Source of the DNA: Podarcis vaucheri | Lineage: Eukaryota | Direction: 5' to 3' (one strand) | Assembly (NCBI GenBank): GCA_965113315.1 | Contig: OZ220365.1 | Length of the DNA stretch: 64,000 bases | Part shown: in pieces, positions 1-35,400 of the stretch | Numbering within the stretch: the stretch's first letter is position 1 | Layout of the letters: each line of letters begins with the position of its first letter | Made by a program: the position numbers and the translations under genes | Notes under the pieces: generated by a model | What the model was told of the DNA's origin: nothing | The model's database searches: none | What the model saw: the letters and a program-made list of their open reading frames with translations, nothing else

Positions 1-523
1 GTCTTGTGTGAGGTCTCAGTTTCAGCTCTCCAGACGGCTAGTTGTTTGCATTTGTCCCAGAGTGCAGGGTGGATTTTGTTACATAGTTTGAGGTGAAGAG
101 TGAGCAGATCTTTGTTGGTTTGGTTTAGTAGGTATCTTTTCTTATGTATTTCGTTTCTGATTAGGGATAGTTCAGTTCGTTTCAGGATCCTTTCGGTAGC
201 TGGGGTTTTAGAGTGGAATTTAAGTTGGAAGCATGTGGGAGTTAAGTTGTTGTCTCGGCAGTTGCGTAGGAACAGGAGATCACATAAGATGGTGGCTCTT
301 CGGATTTCTAGTTTCTCGTAGGTTCTTGTCAGCTGGAAGGTTTCCTCCCCGTAGAGGTGAGATATTTGCTTTCGTAGATTTTCACGGGTACAGGAATGCA
401 GGTTTTGGTGTCTTCGGGTGTCTTCCCGTGTAAGAGTCGGGGTGTCTGTGCGACGTTTCGACGAGGTCTCACTCGTCATCTTCAGGCTGGTGCTTTCGGC
501 TTCTTGTTACTGGAACAGAGCAG
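1..523 (-). mobile_element. Inverted (mirror) copy of the same PLE 5' end, truncated by the window edge
   Basis: 1-512 is the reverse complement of 521-1032 (position sum 1033; mirrored ORFs 100..321/712..933 and 233..433/600..800 are identical); 513-523 continues as the reverse complement of 3471-3481. Confidence 0.95.
450..487 (-). ncRNA. Mirror copy of the hammerhead-like motif
   Basis: Reverse complement of 546-583. Confidence 0.65.
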
Positions 524-545
524 TAACAAGAAGCCGAAAGCACCA

Positions 546-583
546 GCCTGAAGATGACGAGTGAGACCTCGTCGAAACGTCGC
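546..583 (+). ncRNA. Minimal hammerhead ribozyme-like motif in 5' pLTR
   Basis: GC-CTGAAGA-T-GACGAG-tgagac-CTCGTC-GAAAC-GTC-GC: conserved core boxes, 6-bp stem II, palindromic ACGT in place of stem III; only 2 bp of stem I visible. Confidence 0.7.
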
Positions 584-3274
584 ACAGACACCCCGACTCT
601 TACACGGGAAGACACCCGAAGACACCAAAACCTGCATTCCTGTACCCGTGAAAATCTACGAAAGCAAATATCTCACCTCTACGGGGAGGAAACCTTCCAG
701 CTGACAAGAACCTACGAGAAACTAGAAATCCGAAGAGCCACCATCTTATGTGATCTCCTGTTCCTACGCAACTGCCGAGACAACAACTTAACTCCCACAT
801 GCTTCCAACTTAAATTCCACTCTAAAACCCCAGCTACCGAAAGGATCCTGAAACGAACTGAACTATCCCTAATCAGAAACGAAATACATAAGAAAAGATA
901 CCTACTAAACCAAACCAACAAAGATCTGCTCACTCTTCACCTCAAACTATGTAACAAAATCCACCCTGCACTCTGGGACAAATGCAAACAACTAGCCGTC
1001 TGGAGAGCTGAAACTGAGACCTCACACAAGACAGACAGACACACCAACAAACTCTACAAACTAGAGAAACGCCAGAAACCCAGCCACCCTCCACAACAAC
1101 CCATGAAACAAACAGTACATAACATATCAGACAGGATCCTCACCCCAACTGAAACCAAAGTACTCTCCAAAGGTTTCAACTTTGCAGTCGCCCCCAGACG
1201 CATCCCCACGGAAAACATCATATGCGGAGTCGAAGCTAGCCTGACCAAAATCGACCCAGATGAAGCCAATAAAATCAGACTTGAAGTCACCAACATCCTT
1301 TGCTCCAGCAAACCACCCAGAAGCAATTTACACAAAGAAGAACAGAAAGCACTCACCAACCTGAGGAAAGACAACAACATAATCATTCTCCCAGCAGACA
1401 AAGGCAACGCCACTGTTGTGATGAACACATCGGACTACCAAGCAAAACTATCAAATCTACTCCAAGACCCTACCTACCAACCTATAAAAACAGATCCCAC
1501 CACCTATCTGGAAAAAACCACCAAATCCAAAATAAAAGCCTCTCCTATCAGTGAAGAAATCCAGCTAAGAATCATCCCCAGAGAAAAATCTTCCAGATGC
1601 CCCAAACTCTACGGTCTCCCCAAGATACACAAAGAAGGAACACCACTCAGACCAATAGTCAGCTCCATAGGCTCACCTCTACAAAATCTCGCTAAATTTC
1701 TCGCTAAGCAACTTCAGCCCTATGCAGAATCCATCGCTTCACACGTTACTAACTCCTTCCAGTTCATAGAAACAATAAAGAAGCAATACCTACATCCCGA
1801 TGACCTACTTGTGAGCTTCGATGTTGTATCTCTCTTCACTCAAGTGCCCATTAATGAAGCCTTGACAGCCATTCAAAACAAATACAACCCCCCCAAATAC
1901 ATCCTGGACCTGACCAACCACTGCCTAACCAACACGTACTTCATCCACAATGGACAAAGATACAAACAGATAGAAGGAGCACCTATGGGATCACCCCTCT
2001 CACCGGTCATCGCAAATTTGTACATGGAACACTTTGAAACCAATGCTTTAGACAAGTCAGAACACAAACCCAAACTTTGGCTCAGATATGTTGACGACAC
2101 CTTTGTAATTTGGCCACACGGGAAAGAAAAACTAGATAGCTTCCTCACACATCTCAACAGCCTACACCCCAAAATACAATTCACTATGGAAATAGAAGAC
2201 AACAACCAACTCCCCTTTCTTGACGTCCTAATCTACAAAAAACCTGATGGCTCCCTAGGACACACTATCTACCAGAAAAAAACACACACCAACCGCTACT
2301 TACATGCACAATCACACCACCACCCTGCACAAATAAACTCCGTAGCCAAGACTCTCATCTCCAGAACCAAACGCCTGGCTGACAAAGACCACTTGACAAC
2401 TGAGTTACAGAATCTCTCAAATGTGTTAATCGCCAATGGATACCAGAAAAACAGGGTTACGAAGCTAATCCAAAAAGAAACACCCCCCAAAAACCAAGAC
2501 ACAGAAGAAAACAATGGCATGGCCCTCCTTCCTTATATCAAGGGCACTACAGACAAAATCAGCAAAATCCTCCATAAACACAATATCAAAACAGCCTTCT
2601 GCACCAACCAAAAAATAGCCAATATCCTCAGAAACCCAAAAGACAAAATCCAGCTGGAAAACCAAGGGGTCTATGAAATACCCTGCAAAGTCTGCCCAGC
2701 CACGTACATTGGACAAACAAACAGACGAATAAATGCACGTATCGCAGAACACAAGAATGCCGTCAAAAAAGAAGAAAAAACTTCCTCTCTTTTCCAACAC
2801 ATGAAAGAAACAGGACACGAAATTAATTTTGCAGATTCCAAATTGCTCTTTAACATGGAACATCACCACAAGAGAATAATCATGGAAGCCATCGAGATAG
2901 AGAAACACCCTCACAACATGAACAAGCGTGACGACACGTCCCGCCTGCCAGACATCTGGAAATTAGCCCTCCCCACAAAAACCGACACCAGAACCAGAGG
3001 CACACAGAACGCCGTCACCAATCAACCACACCAGACCCAAACCCAGACCCTCTCCACAGACATATTACAGACTCCATCCAGTAGCCAAACTATAGTGGCA
3101 CCTCCGGATGCTGCACCCCCCTGCAAGCCCTACACAGATCTGGCTGGCACAAGGCACAAAACCACAGCTCGCCCCTATACACGAAGCCAAGCCAGAGCAC
3201 AACTAAATGCAGCACAGCCATCTTCTCAGAAAAACTCTTCACAAGCTCAAGAGGTCAAGACACAAAAGCTTTAG
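554..3274 (+). CDS. Penelope-like retroelement (Poseidon-like) ORF: N-terminal domain, reverse transcriptase and C-terminal GIY-YIG endonuclease, 906 aa, uninterrupted
   Basis: PLE RT motifs ADKG, LYGLPKIHK..PLRPIVS, SFDVVSLFT, GAPMGSPLSPVIANLYM, LRYVDD (2087-2098), LPFLDV; GIY-YIG GVYEIPC..C..YIGQT..R..EH starting 2666; no Cys-rich linker between RT and EN. Confidence 0.95.
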   Translation: MTSETSSKRRTDTPTLTREDTRRHQNLHSCTRENLRKQISHLYGEETFQLTRTYEKLEIRRATILCDLLFLRNCRDNNLTPTCFQLKFHSKTPATERILKRTELSLIRNEIHKKRYLLNQTNKDLLTLHLKLCNKIHPALWDKCKQLAVWRAETETSHKTDRHTNKLYKLEKRQKPSHPPQQPMKQTVHNISDRILTPTETKVLSKGFNFAVAPRRIPTENIICGVEASLTKIDPDEANKIRLEVTNILCSSKPPRSNLHKEEQKALTNLRKDNNIIILPADKGNATVVMNTSDYQAKLSNLLQDPTYQPIKTDPTTYLEKTTKSKIKASPISEEIQLRIIPREKSSRCPKLYGLPKIHKEGTPLRPIVSSIGSPLQNLAKFLAKQLQPYAESIASHVTNSFQFIETIKKQYLHPDDLLVSFDVVSLFTQVPINEALTAIQNKYNPPKYILDLTNHCLTNTYFIHNGQRYKQIEGAPMGSPLSPVIANLYMEHFETNALDKSEHKPKLWLRYVDDTFVIWPHGKEKLDSFLTHLNSLHPKIQFTMEIEDNNQLPFLDVLIYKKPDGSLGHTIYQKKTHTNRYLHAQSHHHPAQINSVAKTLISRTKRLADKDHLTTELQNLSNVLIANGYQKNRVTKLIQKETPPKNQDTEENNGMALLPYIKGTTDKISKILHKHNIKTAFCTNQKIANILRNPKDKIQLENQGVYEIPCKVCPATYIGQTNRRINARIAEHKNAVKKEEKTSSLFQHMKETGHEINFADSKLLFNMEHHHKRIIMEAIEIEKHPHNMNKRDDTSRLPDIWKLALPTKTDTRTRGTQNAVTNQPHQTQTQTLSTDILQTPSSSQTIVAPPDAAPPCKPYTDLAGTRHKTTARPYTRSQARAQLNAAQPSSQKNSSQAQEVKTQKL

Positions 3275-3443
3275 CAACTAATCTACACTTAATGACCCAC
3301 CCAGTGGTATTCAGAATATCACTCATGAAATCACTCAAGATATCCCTCAAGTAATTAAGGAACAAAAGAAGAAGAGGCACACTAATCTAGGAACTTCCTC
3401 TCTGCCCAGAACGTTGGAGGCTATACACCACACCCCTCAACAG

Positions 3444-3451
3444 TATTTATA
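3444..3451 (+). promoter_or_regulatory. TATA-like box (TATTTATA) of the PLE pLTR
   Basis: Lies 27 nt upstream of 3471, the position equivalent to the fold-back apex at 513-523. Confidence 0.5.
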
Positions 3452-3506
3452 GGAACTCAAACACCAGATTCTGCTCTGTTCCAGTAACAAGAAGCCGAAA
3501 GCACCA

Positions 3507-3544
3507 GCCTGAAGATGACGAGTGAGACCTCGTCGAAACGTCGC
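3507..3544 (+). ncRNA. Minimal hammerhead ribozyme-like motif in 3' pLTR
   Basis: Identical to 546-583 (CTGAAGA at 3509-3515). Confidence 0.7.
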
Positions 3545-3597
3545 ACAGACACCCCGACTCTTACACGGGAAGACACCCGAAGACACCAAAACCTGCA

Positions 3598-26900: not shown

Positions 26901-29286
26901 TGGGACAGTGAATATCATTTCTTTAGCAAGATTTTCGCTTTAACAGTGTTAGTATGATTACTGTTGCTTCATGTCCACCATTTATGCATACCTGCCAGTG
27001 TGTAAAGTCTGCATAAAGTGGAGAACAGGATCACTTTGTGTGCACCTATCACTTCCCTGGACTGCCTCATGTTCACATAGATATCTTTACCTAAACTCAA
27101 CTTCAAATGTATGTGGGTCTCATTGGCATTAGCCTTACCCCTAAAATTATGTGTGTAGGGTTGCATGTGCATAAATCCCATTTAAATATTATATCCAATT
27201 CGTAGATTCCAAGCAGACATGACTTAGGAGCAGGCAGCTATTGTAATTATTTTCTGCCACCACATGCAGAAATATTCATATATCTCTGTAAAAGGTTATA
27301 TTGTAATGTTTCTACAATATGGTGCTAGTTAGCCACAGAAGGCAATGTGTTTTATGACATTTATAGGACACACAATAGCAAAGTTCTCTGGGTGGCTTAC
27401 AGTTAAATCTGAATGTATGTTTCCAGAACTTTTGAGACACTTAGGCTGCAATCTTATGCACTTTTGAGCATAGGATTGCACTATTGGCCCTATTAATATA
27501 TTGACAAACATGCATGGGTTTTTTTCCCCTTGAAATTTCAGATTTTAAAAATTGTAGCCTTGCTAACTTTCCATTACATTTTTCTATACCCTGACTGACA
27601 TGGCATTAATTATGACCTGGCCCGTTTTCCTTGTTTTACTGCCTTTTGTTGCATAATGAAAAATTGCTTGTCTGCACTGCCTTGGTTACCCACACAGCCT
27701 CCTAGTATGCTTGAAGCTATATTTTAAATGAAAATGCAGTGTAGAAATAATAATGAATCCTCTCTCATTTTAGTGTTTAACTAGTAATTGGAATCAAGTG
27801 ACGGGTTAAATAAGAGAGACTTGTAGCTGGAAACTGTGCACATTTAAGAACAAAATAACAAACTTTGGATCCCAGCAGTGTTTTATTCTCAACTTTCTTC
27901 ATAGTTTCAGGAAAAGAAACAATACAACCATCTGGATAAGAGAAAATGTATTTAATAGTTACTAAGTGAATGAAGAAAACTGCAATTAGTTTCTTTAGGA
28001 AAACCTGAAGGAAGTATCAGTAAATCTAGGTGTTTGGGGAGCTGCAGTTGCGGCTTCATTTATTTTATTCTTGTCCAAGAAGGTCCCCCTCACCGTGTGT
28101 TGGGAATCTTGAAACCCAGCAAGTTGCTTCTTTTTTTAAAAAAACAACCCAAAACACTCCCCCACCACTGTCCCAAGTAGTAATCTAGAAACTGGAGGTT
28201 TAAGCATCTATCTATATCAGTGAAGACATTGCTTTCTAATCTCAAGAAAAAAGAAGACAATTTCAGGTATCAATGTGAGAATTGTGATATTGCTGATTAG
28301 TAGTGGTTGGCTAGTCTGTTGAAATGTGGATTCATATATGCTCATTTTCAAAAGTAGTGCTGCTTGTGGTGCTGTGTGTGTGTTTTCTTCTAAAAGTGGA
28401 TAATTTCAAATTTTCACTTTTCAAAGTGTTTGCTCAAGTGGAGTCCATGTTAAACGAAGTGTGGTAAATAAATTTAAAGAGTTTGGATCAAGAGGTAGCC
28501 TTCTGCAAATGGAAGAGCTGGCAATCCAGTGGAGGCTGCTATTCACAGAAAGAGGAAGAGGGGATTCTAAATTCCTGAGCACATTTTTAGGGGCACCAGG
28601 GGACTCTGCTCATGCAATCTCTGGATCCAGCCCAGAATGTAATAAAAGGCCCCTTCACTGTCATTTTTCATAGAAATAGCTGTTAAAGTCTTTAGTCTTT
28701 AGTATTTAGTAATCAACCAATTGCTGCTGTGGTGAAGTATCACTGCATATTTTGCATACATTTAAGTTCTAATTGAATTATCAGAATATACATTTTATAT
28801 TTATATTTAGCTCAAAACATTTACAGTTTTTCCCTTTTCTTGTGTGTGTATACCTTCAAACCGAGAGTTATGCTTTGTGCATTGAATGGAGTGGGCTGTA
28901 GTCTATAAAAGAGTGTGTACTGTCATTTTTTTAGTCCTGATGGTGCCATGAGACTCGTTCTAGTTTTTGTCGTGCACCACAATATACATTTACGAATGTG
29001 AAACTGAAGTTCCAGTAGCACACACACAGAGATCACTTGGACTAATGATAAAACTCTTTCAAACCAATGCTGTGTATAATGACATGGATGCCAAATTTTA
29101 TATTGTAAATGTTTGGTTTTATTATGAAAATAAATAAGAACATTTATATATTAAAAAGAAATTGCAGATCCATTGGAGAATTATATCATTTTCCCTATAT
29201 TTTTTATGTGTTTGGCTTTGTTAAACATAATGAAGAGAGAAAAACAGACAAAATAACCCTTTGCTGCTATTTTAATTTTTATCTAG

Positions 29287-29422
29287 GAAACCAGATTTGA
29301 CAGACTCTGCTTCGCTGCTAGAGACATTTAAATTCCTTGAAAATGCTGCAGCAGAATTTAGTGATGAGGACGAAGATGATGATATTGATGGAAGAGAGAG
29401 AACAATCATGGACACTTCAACG
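29287..29422 (+). CDS. STRN: STRN exon 6
   Basis: atctag|KPDLTDSASLLETFKFLENAAAEFSDEDEDDDIDGRERTIMDTST|gtgggc. Confidence 0.94.
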
Positions 29423-29576
29423 GTGGGCTGAGAACTCTTAATCATAGAACAAGACTTTCAGTGATGGGATCTTAAAAATCATGATATGGCATATATTCCA
29501 ATCATGTGTGAGCAAATGCAAAGATAAAAAAAATTCCTTCCAGTAGCACCTTAAAGACCAACTAAGTTAGTTCTTG

Positions 29577-29614
29577 GTATGAGCTTTCGTGTGCATGCAC
29601 ACTTCTTCAGATAC
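29577..29614 (-). ncRNA. Mirror copy of minimal hammerhead ribozyme
   Basis: Reverse complement of 31836-31873. Confidence 0.82.
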
Positions 29615-29647
29615 ACTGAAACAGAAGTTGCCAGATCCTTCTATATA
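29615..29647 (-). promoter_or_regulatory. Mirror TATA + Inr core promoter, antisense to STRN
   Basis: Reverse complement of 31803-31835. Confidence 0.55.
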
Positions 29648-29793
29648 GTGAGAAGGTGGGGAGGGGTGTTACTCAGAAGGGTGGTGGGAATGGGAGATAG
29701 GCAGATAGCTGGGAGAGCCTGTTGACGACTCTTAACGACTGTAATAGGTCTTACAGGAAAAGGCAAGGGGTGAGGAGGTGAGAAATGGTTTAG

Positions 29794-30636
29794 TCATGTA
29801 TAGTGAGATAAGAATCCAATGTCTTTGTTAAGCCCAGGTTTTTCCATGGTTTTAAGTTTGGTAATGAGTTGTAATTCAGCAGCTTCTCTTTCCAGTCTGT
29901 TTCTGAAATTCCTTTGTAGTAAAACAGCTACTTTGAGATCTTGTATAGAATGTCCTGGGAGATTGAAGTGTTCTCCTACTGGTTTCTCTGTTTTGTGATT
30001 CTTGATGTCAGATTTATGTCCGTTTATTCTTTGGCGTAAGGTTTGGCCTGTTTGTCCAATATAGAGAGCTGAAGGACACTGTTGGCATTTGATGGCATAC
30101 ACAATGTTAGACGATGAGCAATTAAATAGTCCCGAGATGGTATGTGTGATGTTGTTGGGGCCAGTAATGGTGTTGTCCGGGTGTATGTGGCAGCAAAGTT
30201 GGCATCTGGGTTTATTGCAGGCTCTGGTGCCAGTGTCTGTGTTAAGTCTGGTTGTAGTATTATTGTGGGTTAGGAGTTGTTTAAGATTGGGTGGCTGTCT
30301 GTAGGCAATGAAAGGTCTTCCTCCCAGAGCTTGAGAAAGAGAACTGTCATTGTCCAGGAGAGGTTGTAGATCTCTGATGATGCGTTGTACTGTTTTAACT
30401 TGGGAGCTGTATGTGATGACTAGAGGTGTTCTGTTATTTTCTTTTTTGGGTCTGTCTTGCAGCAAGTTCTCTCTGGGTATCAGTCTGGCTCTGTTGATCT
30501 GTTGTCTAACTTCATCTGCTGGGTATTTTAGTTCTGAGAAGGTTTGCTGTAGATCTCTTAGGTGAGAGTCTCTGTCTGTAGAATTGGAACAGATGCGGCT
30601 GTAACGTAGTGCCTGGCTATATACAATGGACTGTTT
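29794..30636 (-). pseudogene. Mirror copy of the truncated Neptune-like ORF
   Basis: Translation identical from KQSIVYSQ to FLSHYT. Confidence 0.9.
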
Positions 30637-31656
30637 AAATTTAATGATTTTCACCCCACAATCAACCTTACAATGAATCAATCTATGCAAGAAATACATT
30701 TTTTGGACACTACTATAAAAATACAGGATGGGCGCATAGACACCACCTTATACCGCAAACCAACTGACCGACAAACATATCTACATGCCTCTAGCTACCA
30801 TCCCAAACATACCAAACAGTCCATTGTATATAGCCAGGCACTACGTTACAGCCGCATCTGTTCCAATTCTACAGACAGAGACTCTCACCTAAGAGATCTA
30901 CAGCAAACCTTCTCAGAACTAAAATACCCAGCAGATGAAGTTAGACAACAGATCAACAGAGCCAGACTGATACCCAGAGAGAACTTGCTGCAAGACAGAC
31001 CCAAAAAAGAAAATAACAGAACACCTCTAGTCATCACATACAGCTCCCAAGTTAAAACAGTACAACGCATCATCAGAGATCTACAACCTCTCCTGGACAA
31101 TGACAGTTCTCTTTCTCAAGCTCTGGGAGGAAGACCTTTCATTGCCTACAGACAGCCACCCAATCTTAAACAACTCCTAACCCACAATAATACTACAACC
31201 AGACTTAACACAGACACTGGCACCAGAGCCTGCAATAAACCCAGATGCCAACTTTGCTGCCACATACACCCGGACAACACCATTACTGGCCCCAACAACA
31301 TCACACATACCATCTCGGGACTATTTAATTGCTCATCGTCTAACATTGTGTATGCCATCAAATGCCAACAGTGTCCTTCAGCTCTCTATATTGGACAAAC
31401 AGGCCAAACCTTACGCCAAAGAATAAACGGACATAAATCTGACATCAAGAATCACAAAACAGAGAAACCAGTAGGAGAACACTTCAATCTCCCAGGACAT
31501 TCTATACAAGATCTCAAAGTAGCTGTTTTACTACAAAGGAATTTCAGAAACAGACTGGAAAGAGAAGCTGCTGAATTACAACTCATTACCAAACTTAAAA
31601 CCATGGAAAAACCTGGGCTTAACAAAGACATTGGATTCTTATCTCACTATACATGA
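30637..31656 (+). pseudogene. 5'-truncated PLE ORF: RT C-terminus/thumb, Cys-rich linker, GIY-YIG endonuclease
   Basis: FNDFHPTINLT..IHFLDT..LYRKPTD..YLHASSYHP; CNKPRCQLC linker (Neptune-type); NIVYAIKCQQC..LYIGQT..R..H; GLN; RT catalytic core missing. Confidence 0.9.
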
Positions 31657-31802
31657 CTAAACCATTTCTCACCTCCTCACCCCTTGCCTTTTCCTGTAAG
31701 ACCTATTACAGTCGTTAAGAGTCGTCAACAGGCTCTCCCAGCTATCTGCCTATCTCCCATTCCCACCACCCTTCTGAGTAACACCCCTCCCCACCTTCTC
31801 AC

Positions 31803-31835
31803 TATATAGAAGGATCTGGCAACTTCTGTTTCAGT
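31803..31835 (+). promoter_or_regulatory. TATA + Inr core promoter of pLTR
   Basis: TATATAGA at 31803 and TCAGT Inr at 31831-31835 (A+1 = 31833, spacing 30 nt). Confidence 0.6.
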
Positions 31836-31873
31836 GTATCTGAAGAAGTGTGCATGCACACGAAAGCTCATAC
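31836..31873 (+). ncRNA. Minimal type I hammerhead ribozyme in Neptune-like pLTR
   Basis: GTAT-CTGAAGA-A-GTGTGC-AT-GCACAC-GAAA-GC-TC-ATAC: stem I GTAT/ATAC, core CUGAAGA and GAAA, stem II, palindromic AGCT stem III, predicted cut after C31869. Confidence 0.85.
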
Positions 31874-32291
31874 CAAGAACTAACTTAGTTGGTCTTTAAG
31901 GTGCTACTGGAAGGAATTTTTTTTATTTTGACTATGGCAGACCAACACGGCTACCTATCTACTACTGGAACCATCAAATGCAAAGATTTAATCATGGCAC
32001 ATTTTTGCAAGTCGGCCTGATAAATGGTATTCTAGTACTGTATTGCTACCTCCTGTCCAATTAAAAGAAGCCTAGCTTGGCCTCCTCCTCTACAATTTAC
32101 ACACGGCTTTGATTAAATTAGATTAAATTCCCTAGTGTTCTAAAGATTATATAGTACATTAGTATTTAAGTTAGATTTAAAATGAACAGTGATGTATATA
32201 TCCTTCTCTTCTGTCCCCCGCCCCCCGAGTTCAGGGATATGTAGAAATAATACAGACAGAAATGTTTCATTTCATTTTCTGTCCTTCATAG

Positions 32292-32427
32292 ATTGTGAGG
32301 AAAAGGGTGCTATCAGATAGCAGTGAAGACCGAGATACTGAAGAGGCCTTGAAGGAGTTTGATTTCTTGGCTACATCCGATGAAGGAGATGGAGAGTCAA
32401 GAAGTTCAGGAGACGGCACAGACTGGG
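32292..32427 (+). CDS. STRN: STRN exon 7
   Basis: tcatag|IVRKRVLSDSSEDRDTEEALKEFDFLATSDEGDGESRSSGDGTDW|gtaagg. Confidence 0.95.
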
Positions 32428-35400
32428 GTAAGGAAGTAAAAAGGAATTCTTCAGAAATGCAGGAACTTGGTTAAATGCAAAAAAATGTAGCCGTTGTAAT
32501 ATTGTTGAGGATATGCTGCTGTAGCTCTGGGGTGACACAAGCCCTGCCAGATCCTCCCCACCTTTGTATTTTATCTAGATAGAATAAACTATTTTATTGA
32601 AGTTATTATTTTCTATGAATAGTTTGAATTAGTTGTAAGATGTAACTTTTAAAACTCTATTCTGTAAGGAAATTGGCTATTCTTTTGGGATGCCACTAAA
32701 ACATCTTACAAAACCTTCTAACTCCTTAGGAACATGGCAGATACAGTGTCTTAGCCATGCAATGCTATGGAAACTGGCTGTAGAGGTAACCCAGTAGGAG
32801 AACGCTGTAGGTCATGTGCCTGTCATGACTTTATGTGTTTCATTGGTTGGCCAAGAAGGAAAAAACACTTGGTTCAATCTCATTACATAAGAGCACGACC
32901 AAGACATAGACCAACTCCACCACTTGATACTTCTCGGCGTTAAAGCCCTTGGGCCAGAATAAGCCCCACAGAGTCTGCTTTGGCATTAGCTTCATGACTT
33001 CAGTTAGTGAAATGGTAGAGTAAAAAAACAGAATGAAATAGCAGACAATGTGAGCCTGTTTCAGGGCAAAATGGCCAGATGGGAGTCTGACATGCAGTGT
33101 CAGGGCTTCCCATTCCTTCTGAAGCCTGTTTTGCATGCTGGGTTCACTTTCATTCTCCGCACTCCCTTTGCCTACCAGACCAAGATTGATATTTAAGAAT
33201 GTATAAAATGCTTAATATAGAATATCTGTGAGTGGTGAACAAGAGGACATAAGAATAAATAATATAAGATCAATCAAATAAAAACTATGAAGCGTAATTT
33301 AGCTTCTTTTGTAGATTGTATCTCTGCAAACTCAAAATACAACTGGGGAAGACCAGAGTAAACAGAGAAGTTTTCAGCAGGTGTCTAAAATGCAGAATAT
33401 CTGTCTCCTATCTCCTTACATGTCAGTTGTTATATACATTATTTTTACTTGGCACTTCCTTGATGGCATTTCACTTCTTCCAGAGTGGCCAAATACAAAT
33501 AATTCGAAACGGGATTGAAATGATGCCTTTGCCTTTGCAATCTGTTTCTGAAGGGTCCATCATACTAACCCATTTCCTGCAGATATTCTTGTAATCCTTT
33601 ATAAACTCATACCTATCCATATTTACTGTTCCTCTGGGCTGTGTGTGTGTGTGAGTGAGTGAGAGAGATGTCCCTTTACTTGGGAGCTCTCCTCCTGGCT
33701 GATACTCCAGTTACTTCACTCTTAGCCAGTTTCTGTTGCAATCATGATTGGTTAGTCCTTCTTATCCGGCATTCTTGTTGTAAACTCTGCATCTATTCCT
33801 ACTTCATTAGCTACTTGCTTCCTGACGATCACTTTTTGCTTAGTTTCCCAGCCTTTGGATTTTGTAACCTCCATTTGCTGATCTTCCTCTGCTCCATCCT
33901 CTCCACATCTGGCTATGTTTTGTTTTTCTTTCTCCCTCCCACACCTGTTCAAATGGCATAGGTTGAATCCATCATACCTTATGCTCCACTGACTCTGGCA
34001 GCCCAATCACATGCATGCTTTACCTGGAGGAAGTCCCACCAAATTCTGTGGGGCTTAATCCTAGGTAAGTATGCATATGCTATGAACGTGAAATCTGAGA
34101 GCGGGATACTGTTGTGCATCAGTATTCAGAAATGGAAGGGGAAAAAATCTGAGTAATCTATATAGTTTATTAGAGCAAGATTTGCCTCATGTGACAAACA
34201 GACTTTAAAAACAAAACAAAACAAAACAAAACACTGGAATGGGTTACTTTTCAAAAAGCCGCTTGAATGAATTTTTAAATGTGTTCTCACAGGTGATGTA
34301 TAAGCAGAGGTAAAAACACGTTAGGACAAGTCAGAATGCCATTTCTACACAATATCTGGGGTTATGTGTAATTATAGCAACTCCCTTCTCCTTGTGACCC
34401 TCCCAAAAAGGTAACAACAGGTGGAATGCCATTTCATAAGATCTGCAGAGGTAGCAGCAGTGTTGTGCACCTGACATGAACACAGTCAGGTGGTTGGCAC
34501 CAGGGACGTGAAACACAAACAATTTGTACCTTTTTTATTGGCTTCTTGGTGATGAGAGTAAAGAATAATAATAATTGGGGGGTGTATTAGTTTTTGTTAC
34601 TATGTTATGCATTTTTGTGTTTTTATATTATAAACTGCTCTGTGATCCTTGGGTGAAGGGCGGTATAGAAATTTTAATAATGATGATGGTGATGATGATG
34701 TTACAATGCTCCGTGTTGGCTTCATTGTAATACAGACACTCTTGTATAAGCAGATGGCAAGTTGCAAAATTCTTCTGAAGTTCAGCCTGCGCTTGGAAAA
34801 CAGTTCCCAAAACGCTGTGTTACATGTCATTACAGAACGTACATTTAAGTGTGCTTTCAGATGGAATCCTTTGCAAGTGTTAAGCATGCTCACTTGGCTT
34901 ATGCGACACCAGCATGGCATATGAAAATGTGCCAAGTCCTGTGGTAGACTTTGCTACTCTGAATTGACTTGCAGGATCAGTAATGTGGCAGTCTCCAAAT
35001 CAGTTATTAAATGAACCTCTTATTAGATGATACCCCTGGGCTTAAAGTACCTTCATTCCACTTGCTTTCTCATGTTACACTAGTTGGGGGTGCTTGTCAT
35101 TTTGATGCAGCCTAAGATTCAGCCTTGGTGTAAAGTGTGGTTTGTGGAACCACAGGACCTCTGGGTTGTGTGCCTTCTGCTATAGCTGGTGTAAAATGTC
35201 ATAATTTGAACTGTATGAATGAGACCAGGTTCTTCTTACAGCTCTTGAACACCATTATTGCAAGGAGACACACCCACATTGAAGCATAATGCCTAGATTT
35301 ACTGTTTCTGTTACTATCTAATGCAGTGGTGTGCCCGTTTTCTTACTAAAGAATTTTAGTAATTTATTTTTATCTATGTTGCGCAACATAAGAGAAACCC

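Follow-up and report, generated by a model that had tools for sequence, protein, structure and literature searches.

We analysed a window of 64,000 nt, free of N throughout, from contig OZ220365.1 of the Podarcis vaucheri assembly GCA_965113315.1, and found that an intron of a striatin-family gene contains a Penelope-like element (PLE) present as two head-to-head copies within one target site duplication (TSD). The features which make up this locus are listed in Table 1, together with the exons on either side.

Table 1. Features of the PLE insertion and its surroundings, in window coordinates (X1, X5, X13 and X15 are public runs; RT, reverse transcriptase or reverse transcription; ORF, open reading frame; MFE, minimum free energy)
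Feature	Position	Strand	Evidence
Host exon upstream, striatin-family gene, donor 101 nt from left arm	29287-29422	+	Open frame, AG/GT; Striatin-3 7k36_B residues 241-265, weak, E = 0.33
Left TSD copy, CAAATGCAAAGAT	29513-29525		Repeat search, script; single copy in empty-site contigs of X1, X5 and X13
Inverted 5′-truncated PLE copy, 1113 nt, without the 48-nt tail, 3′ end toward left flank	29524-30636	-	Arm identity; X15 contig
Spacer, 177 nt, additional 5′ coding sequence from the RT C-terminal/thumb region, + copy only	30637-30813	+	ORF continuity, alignment
Partial ORF of 340 codons without internal stop, comprising RT C-terminus, C-x4-C-x2-C linker, GIY-YIG nuclease with CCHH	30637-31656	+	Translation, Pfam, published clade criteria
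Direct arm of + copy: remaining ORF and 3′ untranslated part	30814-31926	+	Repeat search, script
Hammerhead-like motif: helix I GUAU/AUAC, CUGAAGA, palindromic helix II, GAAA, AGCU loop	31833-31873	+	Read from sequence, MFE fold
One-sided 48-nt 3′ tail, + copy only	31927-31974	+	Single occurrence in window; X15 contig from 31945; corresponds to published PLE tail
Right TSD copy	31975-31987		Repeat search, script, contigs
Host exon downstream, striatin-family gene	32292-32427	+	Open frame, AG/GT; Striatin-3 7k36_B residues 288-329, E = 6.4e-10

Anatomy and identity of the insertion

The two arms are exact reverse complements of each other (0 mismatches in 1113 nt, counted by script). An inverted-repeat search returned a slightly longer pair, 29521-30636 and 30814-31929, with a gap of 177 nt, the three extra bases of which include one mismatch. 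Pairing ends outward at 29523, where the first base beyond the arm is a G, and inward at 30637, where an A stands against 30813; both positions are mismatched. The insert is bounded exactly by the two identical 13-nt copies of the direct repeat, and the AT at 29524-29525 is common to the left TSD copy, as its last two bases, and to the inverted arm, as its first two. The tail sequence was found only once in the window by pattern search. The spacer lies in the same open frame as the plus-strand arm and this frame is uninterrupted across 30813/30814 and as far as a stop after 31656, which identifies the spacer as further 5′ sequence of the plus-strand copy. This copy is itself 5′-truncated at 30637; copies of the family in other samples extend upstream of that position, as seen from the loose ends of contigs. 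It should be noted that the outer junctions were also seen in read-derived contigs, and that the inner junctions (30636/30637 and 30813/30814) and the length of the arms are taken from the assembly.

Much of this anatomy had been proposed in an initial annotation of the window, which described arms without a mismatch, a spacer consisting of more 5′ RT sequence of the plus-strand copy, a 3′ tail on that copy longer by 48 nt (to 31974) and a single 13-bp TSD with a 2-nt AT overlap at the left join. These four points were all recovered here.

The partial ORF ends in a GIY-YIG domain (Pfam PF01541, E = 1.3e-5, 25.9 bits against a cut-off of 22.6). Two cysteines, a hallmark of PLE nucleases, are found between GIY and YIG, and the translation, VYAIKCQQCPSALYIGQ...INGH...H, contains the full CCHH motif. 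Upstream of the domain there is a linker, C-NKPR-C-QL-C (CX4CX2C), which is absent at the aligned place in the ORF of a second PLE, located at the start of the window and described below. Neptune and Nematis possess a CX2-5CxxC linker, which Penelope/Poseidon lack (Craig et al. 2021, PMC8557442); judged by its motif the linker is of the Neptune/Nematis type, a grouping within which the motif alone cannot split Neptune from Nematis. The N-terminal 60 residues of the partial ORF align to residues 534-593 of the 906-amino acid ORF of the second PLE, just past its RVT_1 domain, and the two ORFs are only 23% identical. The RT core is missing from the partial ORF owing to the 5′ truncation, leaving only the C-terminal part of RT. 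Going by the predicted protein, an endonuclease-bearing (EN+), Neptune-like PLE which is 5′-truncated within RT is a fair description of this element, and the Neptune-like identity given in the initial annotation agrees with the GIY-YIG domain, the CX4CX2C linker and the CCHH motif. Pattern searches, blastn and tblastn found no further copies of this PLE family in the 64-kb window.

The insertion has the layout of an EN+ PLE insertion, with an adjacent inverted 5′-truncated copy, a one-sided tail and a TSD. Insertions of PLEs are known to be highly 5′-truncated and to show these same three features (PMC8557442, PMC3846280), and units with inverted pseudo-long terminal repeats (pLTRs), a one-sided 31-bp tail and TSDs of 8-10 bp were described by Arkhipova et al. 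(2013, PMC3846280). As in this canonical layout, the inverted 5′-truncated copy adjoins the direct copy head-to-head, the tail is present on one outer end only, a short TSD surrounds the whole unit, the nuclease is of the GIY-YIG/CCHH type and the family is strongly 5′-truncated. The insertion differs from it in that both copies are truncated inside the ORF, the repeat consists of 1.1 kb of coding sequence and 3′ untranslated region and not of a short pLTR, there is no direct pLTR, the tail is 48 nt long vs 30-40 bp, and the allele without the insert is also available. Earlier publications had described this geometry as general among PLE clades and had put forward self-priming, and the locus is a clean, polymorphic example of the Neptune type. 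The novelty implied by the initial annotation thus has to be withdrawn, as the inverted 5′-truncated copy, the one-sided tail and the self-priming hypothesis were already in the PLE literature.

Several smaller observations concern the junctions. Both copies are 5′-truncated directly before a sense-strand AAA run (30637 and 30814), both cDNAs thus ending in TTT, and a TTTAAA palindrome is centred exactly on the apex junction 30636|30637; truncation before AAA runs may be due to release of the cDNA at weak rA:dT hybrids. At the junction of tail and TSD, CCATCAAATGCAAA (31971-31984) agrees at 13 of 14 positions with the element coding sequence CCATCAAATGCCAA, located at 31355-31368 and, in the other arm, at 30082-30095, i.e. 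the last 4 nt of the insert and the first part of the target resemble an internal RNA site. This likeness could be due to chance (estimated at ~0.3 after multiple testing) or could be a trace of annealing between target and RNA at first priming. The last 14 nt of the tail, ACTACTGGAACCAT (31961-31974), are unlike many other copies of the family, which continue with GTAACT... after 31960 in contig loose ends, and they repeat the 9-mer CTACTGGAA of the element (31904-31912). This deviant tail end may represent a subfamily variant; alternatively, RT may have begun a little more 3′ in the RNA or may have made a small template switch as it started.

Empty alleles and age of the insertion

We compared the Logan contigs of four public runs (X15, X1, X5 and X13) over positions 28600-32900. 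X15 shares the species label of the window and showed 0 differences over ~1.9 kb of flank; it is probably derived from the source individual of the window. Starting in the left flank, one X15 contig crosses the TSD and reaches 29534, within the inverted arm, and a second begins at 31945 in the tail, crosses the right TSD and continues into the flank. X1, which has the same species label and originates from another study, differs at well under 1% of the listed flank positions, and its contig jumps from 29512 to 31975, giving an empty site with a single CAAATGCAAAGAT. Empty sites with one copy each were also found in X5 and X13, which are two other species, the latter having a small indel immediately to the left of it. 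The empty-site contigs of these three runs pass from 29512 or 29503 straight to 31975.

An empty site with one TSD copy indicates that both arms arrived together. The initial annotation had expected the empty allele to hold a single copy of the TSD and had claimed one insertion inside one TSD, and the contigs of X1, X5 and X13 confirm both statements. The exact 13-nt repeat at both ends of the insert, together with its single copy in the empty-site contigs, places the structure beyond chance. The insertion is not fixed and is polymorphic, being filled in X15 and empty in X1, and is younger than the divergence of two haplotypes which share one species label. Such a young age fits the 0 arm-to-arm differences and the open ORF. 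We consider it highly likely that the locus contains a real, single and young PLE insertion of canonical architecture.

The same contigs bear on the possibility that a simple 5′-truncated insertion was made palindromic by long-read mis-assembly or by a fold-back duplication after insertion. The internal structure is known from the assembly alone, tandem and inverted PLE structures have been reported to trouble genome assemblies (PMC8557442), and perfect identity of the arms would also be expected of a mis-assembly. Against this, the X15 contigs join the unique left flank and TSD to the A8T... inverted 3′ end of the element, and the tail to the right TSD and flank, showing that outward-facing 3′ ends are present on both sides of the insert in the reads themselves. 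The arm also abuts the TSD exactly, and the same layout has been published for many PLEs (PMC8557442, PMC3846280), and we regard an artefact or later rearrangement of this kind as very unlikely.

Thousands of contigs were found at ≥ 99% identity to the element. Word depth over the element, measured in contigs, was 300 to 35,000 times that of the flank and rose ~100-fold toward the 3′ end, indicating a very abundant, strongly 5′-truncated and recently active family. The insertion itself also shows very recent activity of the family in this lizard lineage. Many short contigs in all four runs join inverted and direct copies of the hammerhead-like region (29604-29618 to 31833-31858), and one such joint, 29614 to 31836, is an exact zero-loop palindrome which was found in all four runs. 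These joints weakly suggest many very short head-to-head PLE dimers with their apex at the 5′ edge of the hammerhead-like motif; they were given little weight because their shorter sides are < 31 letters and because helix II is itself palindromic. Loose ends of contigs at 31930 and 29527 were considered as the ends of tail-less copies and rejected, as their consensus resembles an indel variant of the tail and T-run and not flanking DNA.

Origin of the mirror copy

L1 twin priming is a known source of inverted retroelement segments: as Ostertag and Kazazian are said to have described in 2001, the second nicked strand primes RT and an inverted 5′ segment is left inside one TSD. The inversion comes with little or no duplication, as the two primers copy different parts of one RNA. 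The insertion shares with these products an inverted 5′ segment within one TSD. However, the segments are not essentially non-overlapping as in L1-type twin priming, since 1113 nt are present twice, in both orientations, with each copy starting near the 3′ end of the element; the initial annotation had drawn the same distinction.

A lizard PLE has been studied in vitro using purified protein, namely PAc, a Poseidon PLE of Anolis carolinensis (Frangieh et al. 2024, PMC11167929). The PAc protein, which is predicted to be a dimer, cuts, and also extends, the top as well as the bottom target strand, unlike R2 and L1, with a preference for the AT-rich cleavage motif 5′-ATT-3′ (PMC11167929). Its RT starts at two adjacent internal RNA sites, without target homology, and the genomic tail corresponds to the sequence between them (PMC11167929). 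The present insertion is like PAc in belonging to a lizard PLE, in its AT-rich cleavage site, where the top-strand nick would fall within 5′-AT|T-3′, and in having a tail which two RT start sites would account for if both target strands were nicked and extended. It is unlike PAc in belonging to another clade, as indicated by the CX2-5CxxC linker which Penelope/Poseidon lack and by the identity of only 23% to the Poseidon-like ORF in the window, and the PAc study showed neither joining of two primed products nor inverted copies.

We favour priming from both target strands followed by end-to-end joining of the two products, to which we assign a probability of about 0.5. The GIY-YIG nuclease would make two nicks 13 bp apart, on the top strand after ...AAAGAT and on the bottom strand after the complement of CAAATG, leaving two 13-nt 3′ overhangs, and both 3′ ends would prime RT of the element RNA. 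The bottom-strand end would start at the distal site and give rise to the plus-strand copy with its 48-nt tail on the right, and the top-strand end would start at the proximal site, 31926, and give rise to the inverted copy without a tail on the left. The two antisense cDNAs would end at 30637 and at the equivalent of 30814, each just after copying a template A-run (AAA), and their 3′ ends would be linked to each other with no homology, through either end joining or an end-to-end template jump. The spacer of 177 nt would then be the difference in length between the two cDNAs, and fill-in would produce the 13-bp TSD. We infer both the assignment of strands to primers and the manner in which the apex was joined.

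In favour of dual-strand priming, both the one-sided tail and the mirror copy would follow directly from what a lizard PLE has been reported to do in vitro, namely to nick and extend both strands and to start RT at two sites which delimit the tail. The position of the top-strand nick within AT|T also agrees with the motif preferred in that study. The recurrence of a tail of fixed sequence would call for a defined start site and not for an arbitrary stop of copy-back synthesis. The 3′ end of the top strand, AAAGAT, can pair with RNA AUUUU at 31925-31929 (5 bp including one G.U), for which the chance is ~1 in 20. At the apex we found 0 nt of microhomology and a loop of 177 nt (script), which a blunt join of two 3′ ends suits better than an annealed snap-back does.

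Snap-back self-priming was the mechanism put forward in the initial annotation. Here a single target-primed reverse transcription (TPRT) from the right end produces a cDNA which stops at 30637, and its 3′ end folds onto its own cDNA at 30814 and copies back; we consider this doubtful, although it would yield a fold-back with identical arms (0/1113) by construction and in head-to-head orientation. Its end step, in which copying halts 48 nt short while RNA and protein are still on the tail and the left join is made through the AT microhomology, is equally doubtful, and it would account for the AT overlap of 2 nt on the left side. When first-strand cDNA primes itself as a hairpin, as in classical second-strand synthesis, a few bp are needed at the turn and the loop is usually short. 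Here, by contrast, the bases from 30637 onward are not complementary to those from 30813 downward, so there is no pairing at the turn and no complementarity inward of the arms, and a loop of 177 nt is long for a hairpin primer. The template jumps known for R2-type RT land on the 3′ ends of templates and not on internal sites, which also stands against a jump to 30814. Finally, snap-back gives no reason for the recurrent loss of a defined tail at one end and disregards the in-vitro finding that both strands are nicked and extended (PMC11167929). It is consequently one of two models which fit, and the worse fit of the two.

Further PLE palindromes speak for self-priming. It was from palindromes at inverted PLE junctions that self-priming was inferred in 2013 (Arkhipova et al. 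2013, PMC3846280), and zero-loop palindromic joints are present in contigs of the element family studied here. The second PLE in the window likewise has a loop of only 8 nt. It forms an inverted structure with arms at 1-512 and 521-1032 (0 mismatches), of which the inverted copy, 1-512, is cut by the window edge. The body of this element, 521-3597, is complete, with direct terminal repeats of 116 nt (521-636 = 3482-3597), and ends in a (TA)n tract. Its 906-amino acid ORF (554-3271) contains RVT_1 and GIY-YIG domains without the CX2-5CxxC linker, and the element is Poseidon-like. Its loop of 8 nt corresponds in reverse complement to 3474-3481, which lie just before the 3′ terminal repeat, indicating that the loop is extra 5′ sequence of one copy, read from a tandem-type template. 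The initial annotation was correct in reporting a second, distantly related PLE clade with like geometry (exact arms, and the low ORF identity given above), and this sharing of geometry between two distant clades is what the literature says of PLEs in general.

Transcripts of PLEs are known to be multi-copy read-throughs (PMC11167929), and a palindrome could accordingly have been formed before integration, if a read-through transcript of an older head-to-head copy had been reverse-transcribed in ordinary TPRT and the left end were simply the point of 5′ truncation. The enzyme would then have to copy through a perfect RNA hairpin of 1.1 kb and the agreement of the left end with the boundary of the tail would have to be fortuitous, and we consider this the least probable of the explanations, at the edge of what is worth entertaining.

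Several points weigh against priming from both strands followed by joining. The in-vitro work used an element of the Poseidon clade and not of Neptune, and it did not demonstrate joining or mention inverted copies. Identity of the arms is automatic under snap-back, and under dual priming both cDNAs would have to come from a single RNA or from RNAs of a single source locus. Zero-loop PLE palindromes appear to be common, although the evidence for this is weak (the 29614 to 31836 joints in four runs, with short sides < 31 nt), and they are more easily explained by the turn-around of a single enzyme or by a defined 5′ end of the RNA; otherwise two separate cDNAs would seldom end on an identical base. 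Position 31926 is a putative start site of the element family, and the inner junctions are those of the assembly.

Taken a step further, dual-strand priming would make the locus a natural footprint of concerted two-strand TPRT by a PLE dimer, with each overhang of the 13-bp stagger priming at one start site. We hold this more specific version tentatively, at somewhat less than even odds. In the literature which we searched, no paper linked two-strand priming to inverted PLE copies. If it is true, PLE integration in the Neptune clade, too, would by default yield a mirror copy with a one-sided tail, and active PLEs would keep seeding long perfect palindromes which are still segregating in lizard populations. 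The locus provides a clean before/after pair for one PLE integration, with the empty allele, both nick positions and the 13-bp stagger, and it also displays two distinct RT start points and an apex free of homology. This allows the in-vitro findings of 2024 to be compared with an in-vivo event from another clade.

RNA motifs and host gene

The hammerhead-like motif of the plus-strand copy is mirrored on the minus strand at ~29577-29617. Its helices are present in the MFE fold, with an extra A after the CUGAAGA box, and the match is at the level of the motif only. Rfam gave no hammerhead call, either for the whole window at the gathering threshold, where no family at all was found, or in local permissive scans (E ≤ 10), which returned only chance snoRNA and miRNA-like matches. 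The RNA fold of the 3′ region was no more stable than that of shuffled sequence (z = -0.3 to -0.75). In the predicted fold, GUUGGUCU (31888-31895) and AGACCAAC (31939-31946) form a perfect 8-bp stem which encloses the boundary of arm and tail, 31926/31927. This stem uses the AC-rich part of the tail and recalls the 'AC-rich stem loop' at the RT start of the Anolis PLE; the predicted fold is not above shuffles.

The two exons flanking the insertion match consecutive parts of Striatin-3, from which the insert is assigned to an intron of a striatin-family gene. This intron has a length of 2869 nt when filled and 407 nt when empty, the latter being the same figure as the ~407 bp given for the intron without the insert in the initial annotation. 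The gene and the plus-strand copy share the same sense strand. The pre-mRNA of a carrier would contain a perfect 1.1-kb hairpin starting 101 nt past the splice donor. The unfixed insertion puts a perfect 1.1-kb inverted repeat ~100 nt from the splice donor of a striatin-family gene, and alleles of carriers and non-carriers form a natural pair in which effects on splicing, RNA editing or local stability could be compared.

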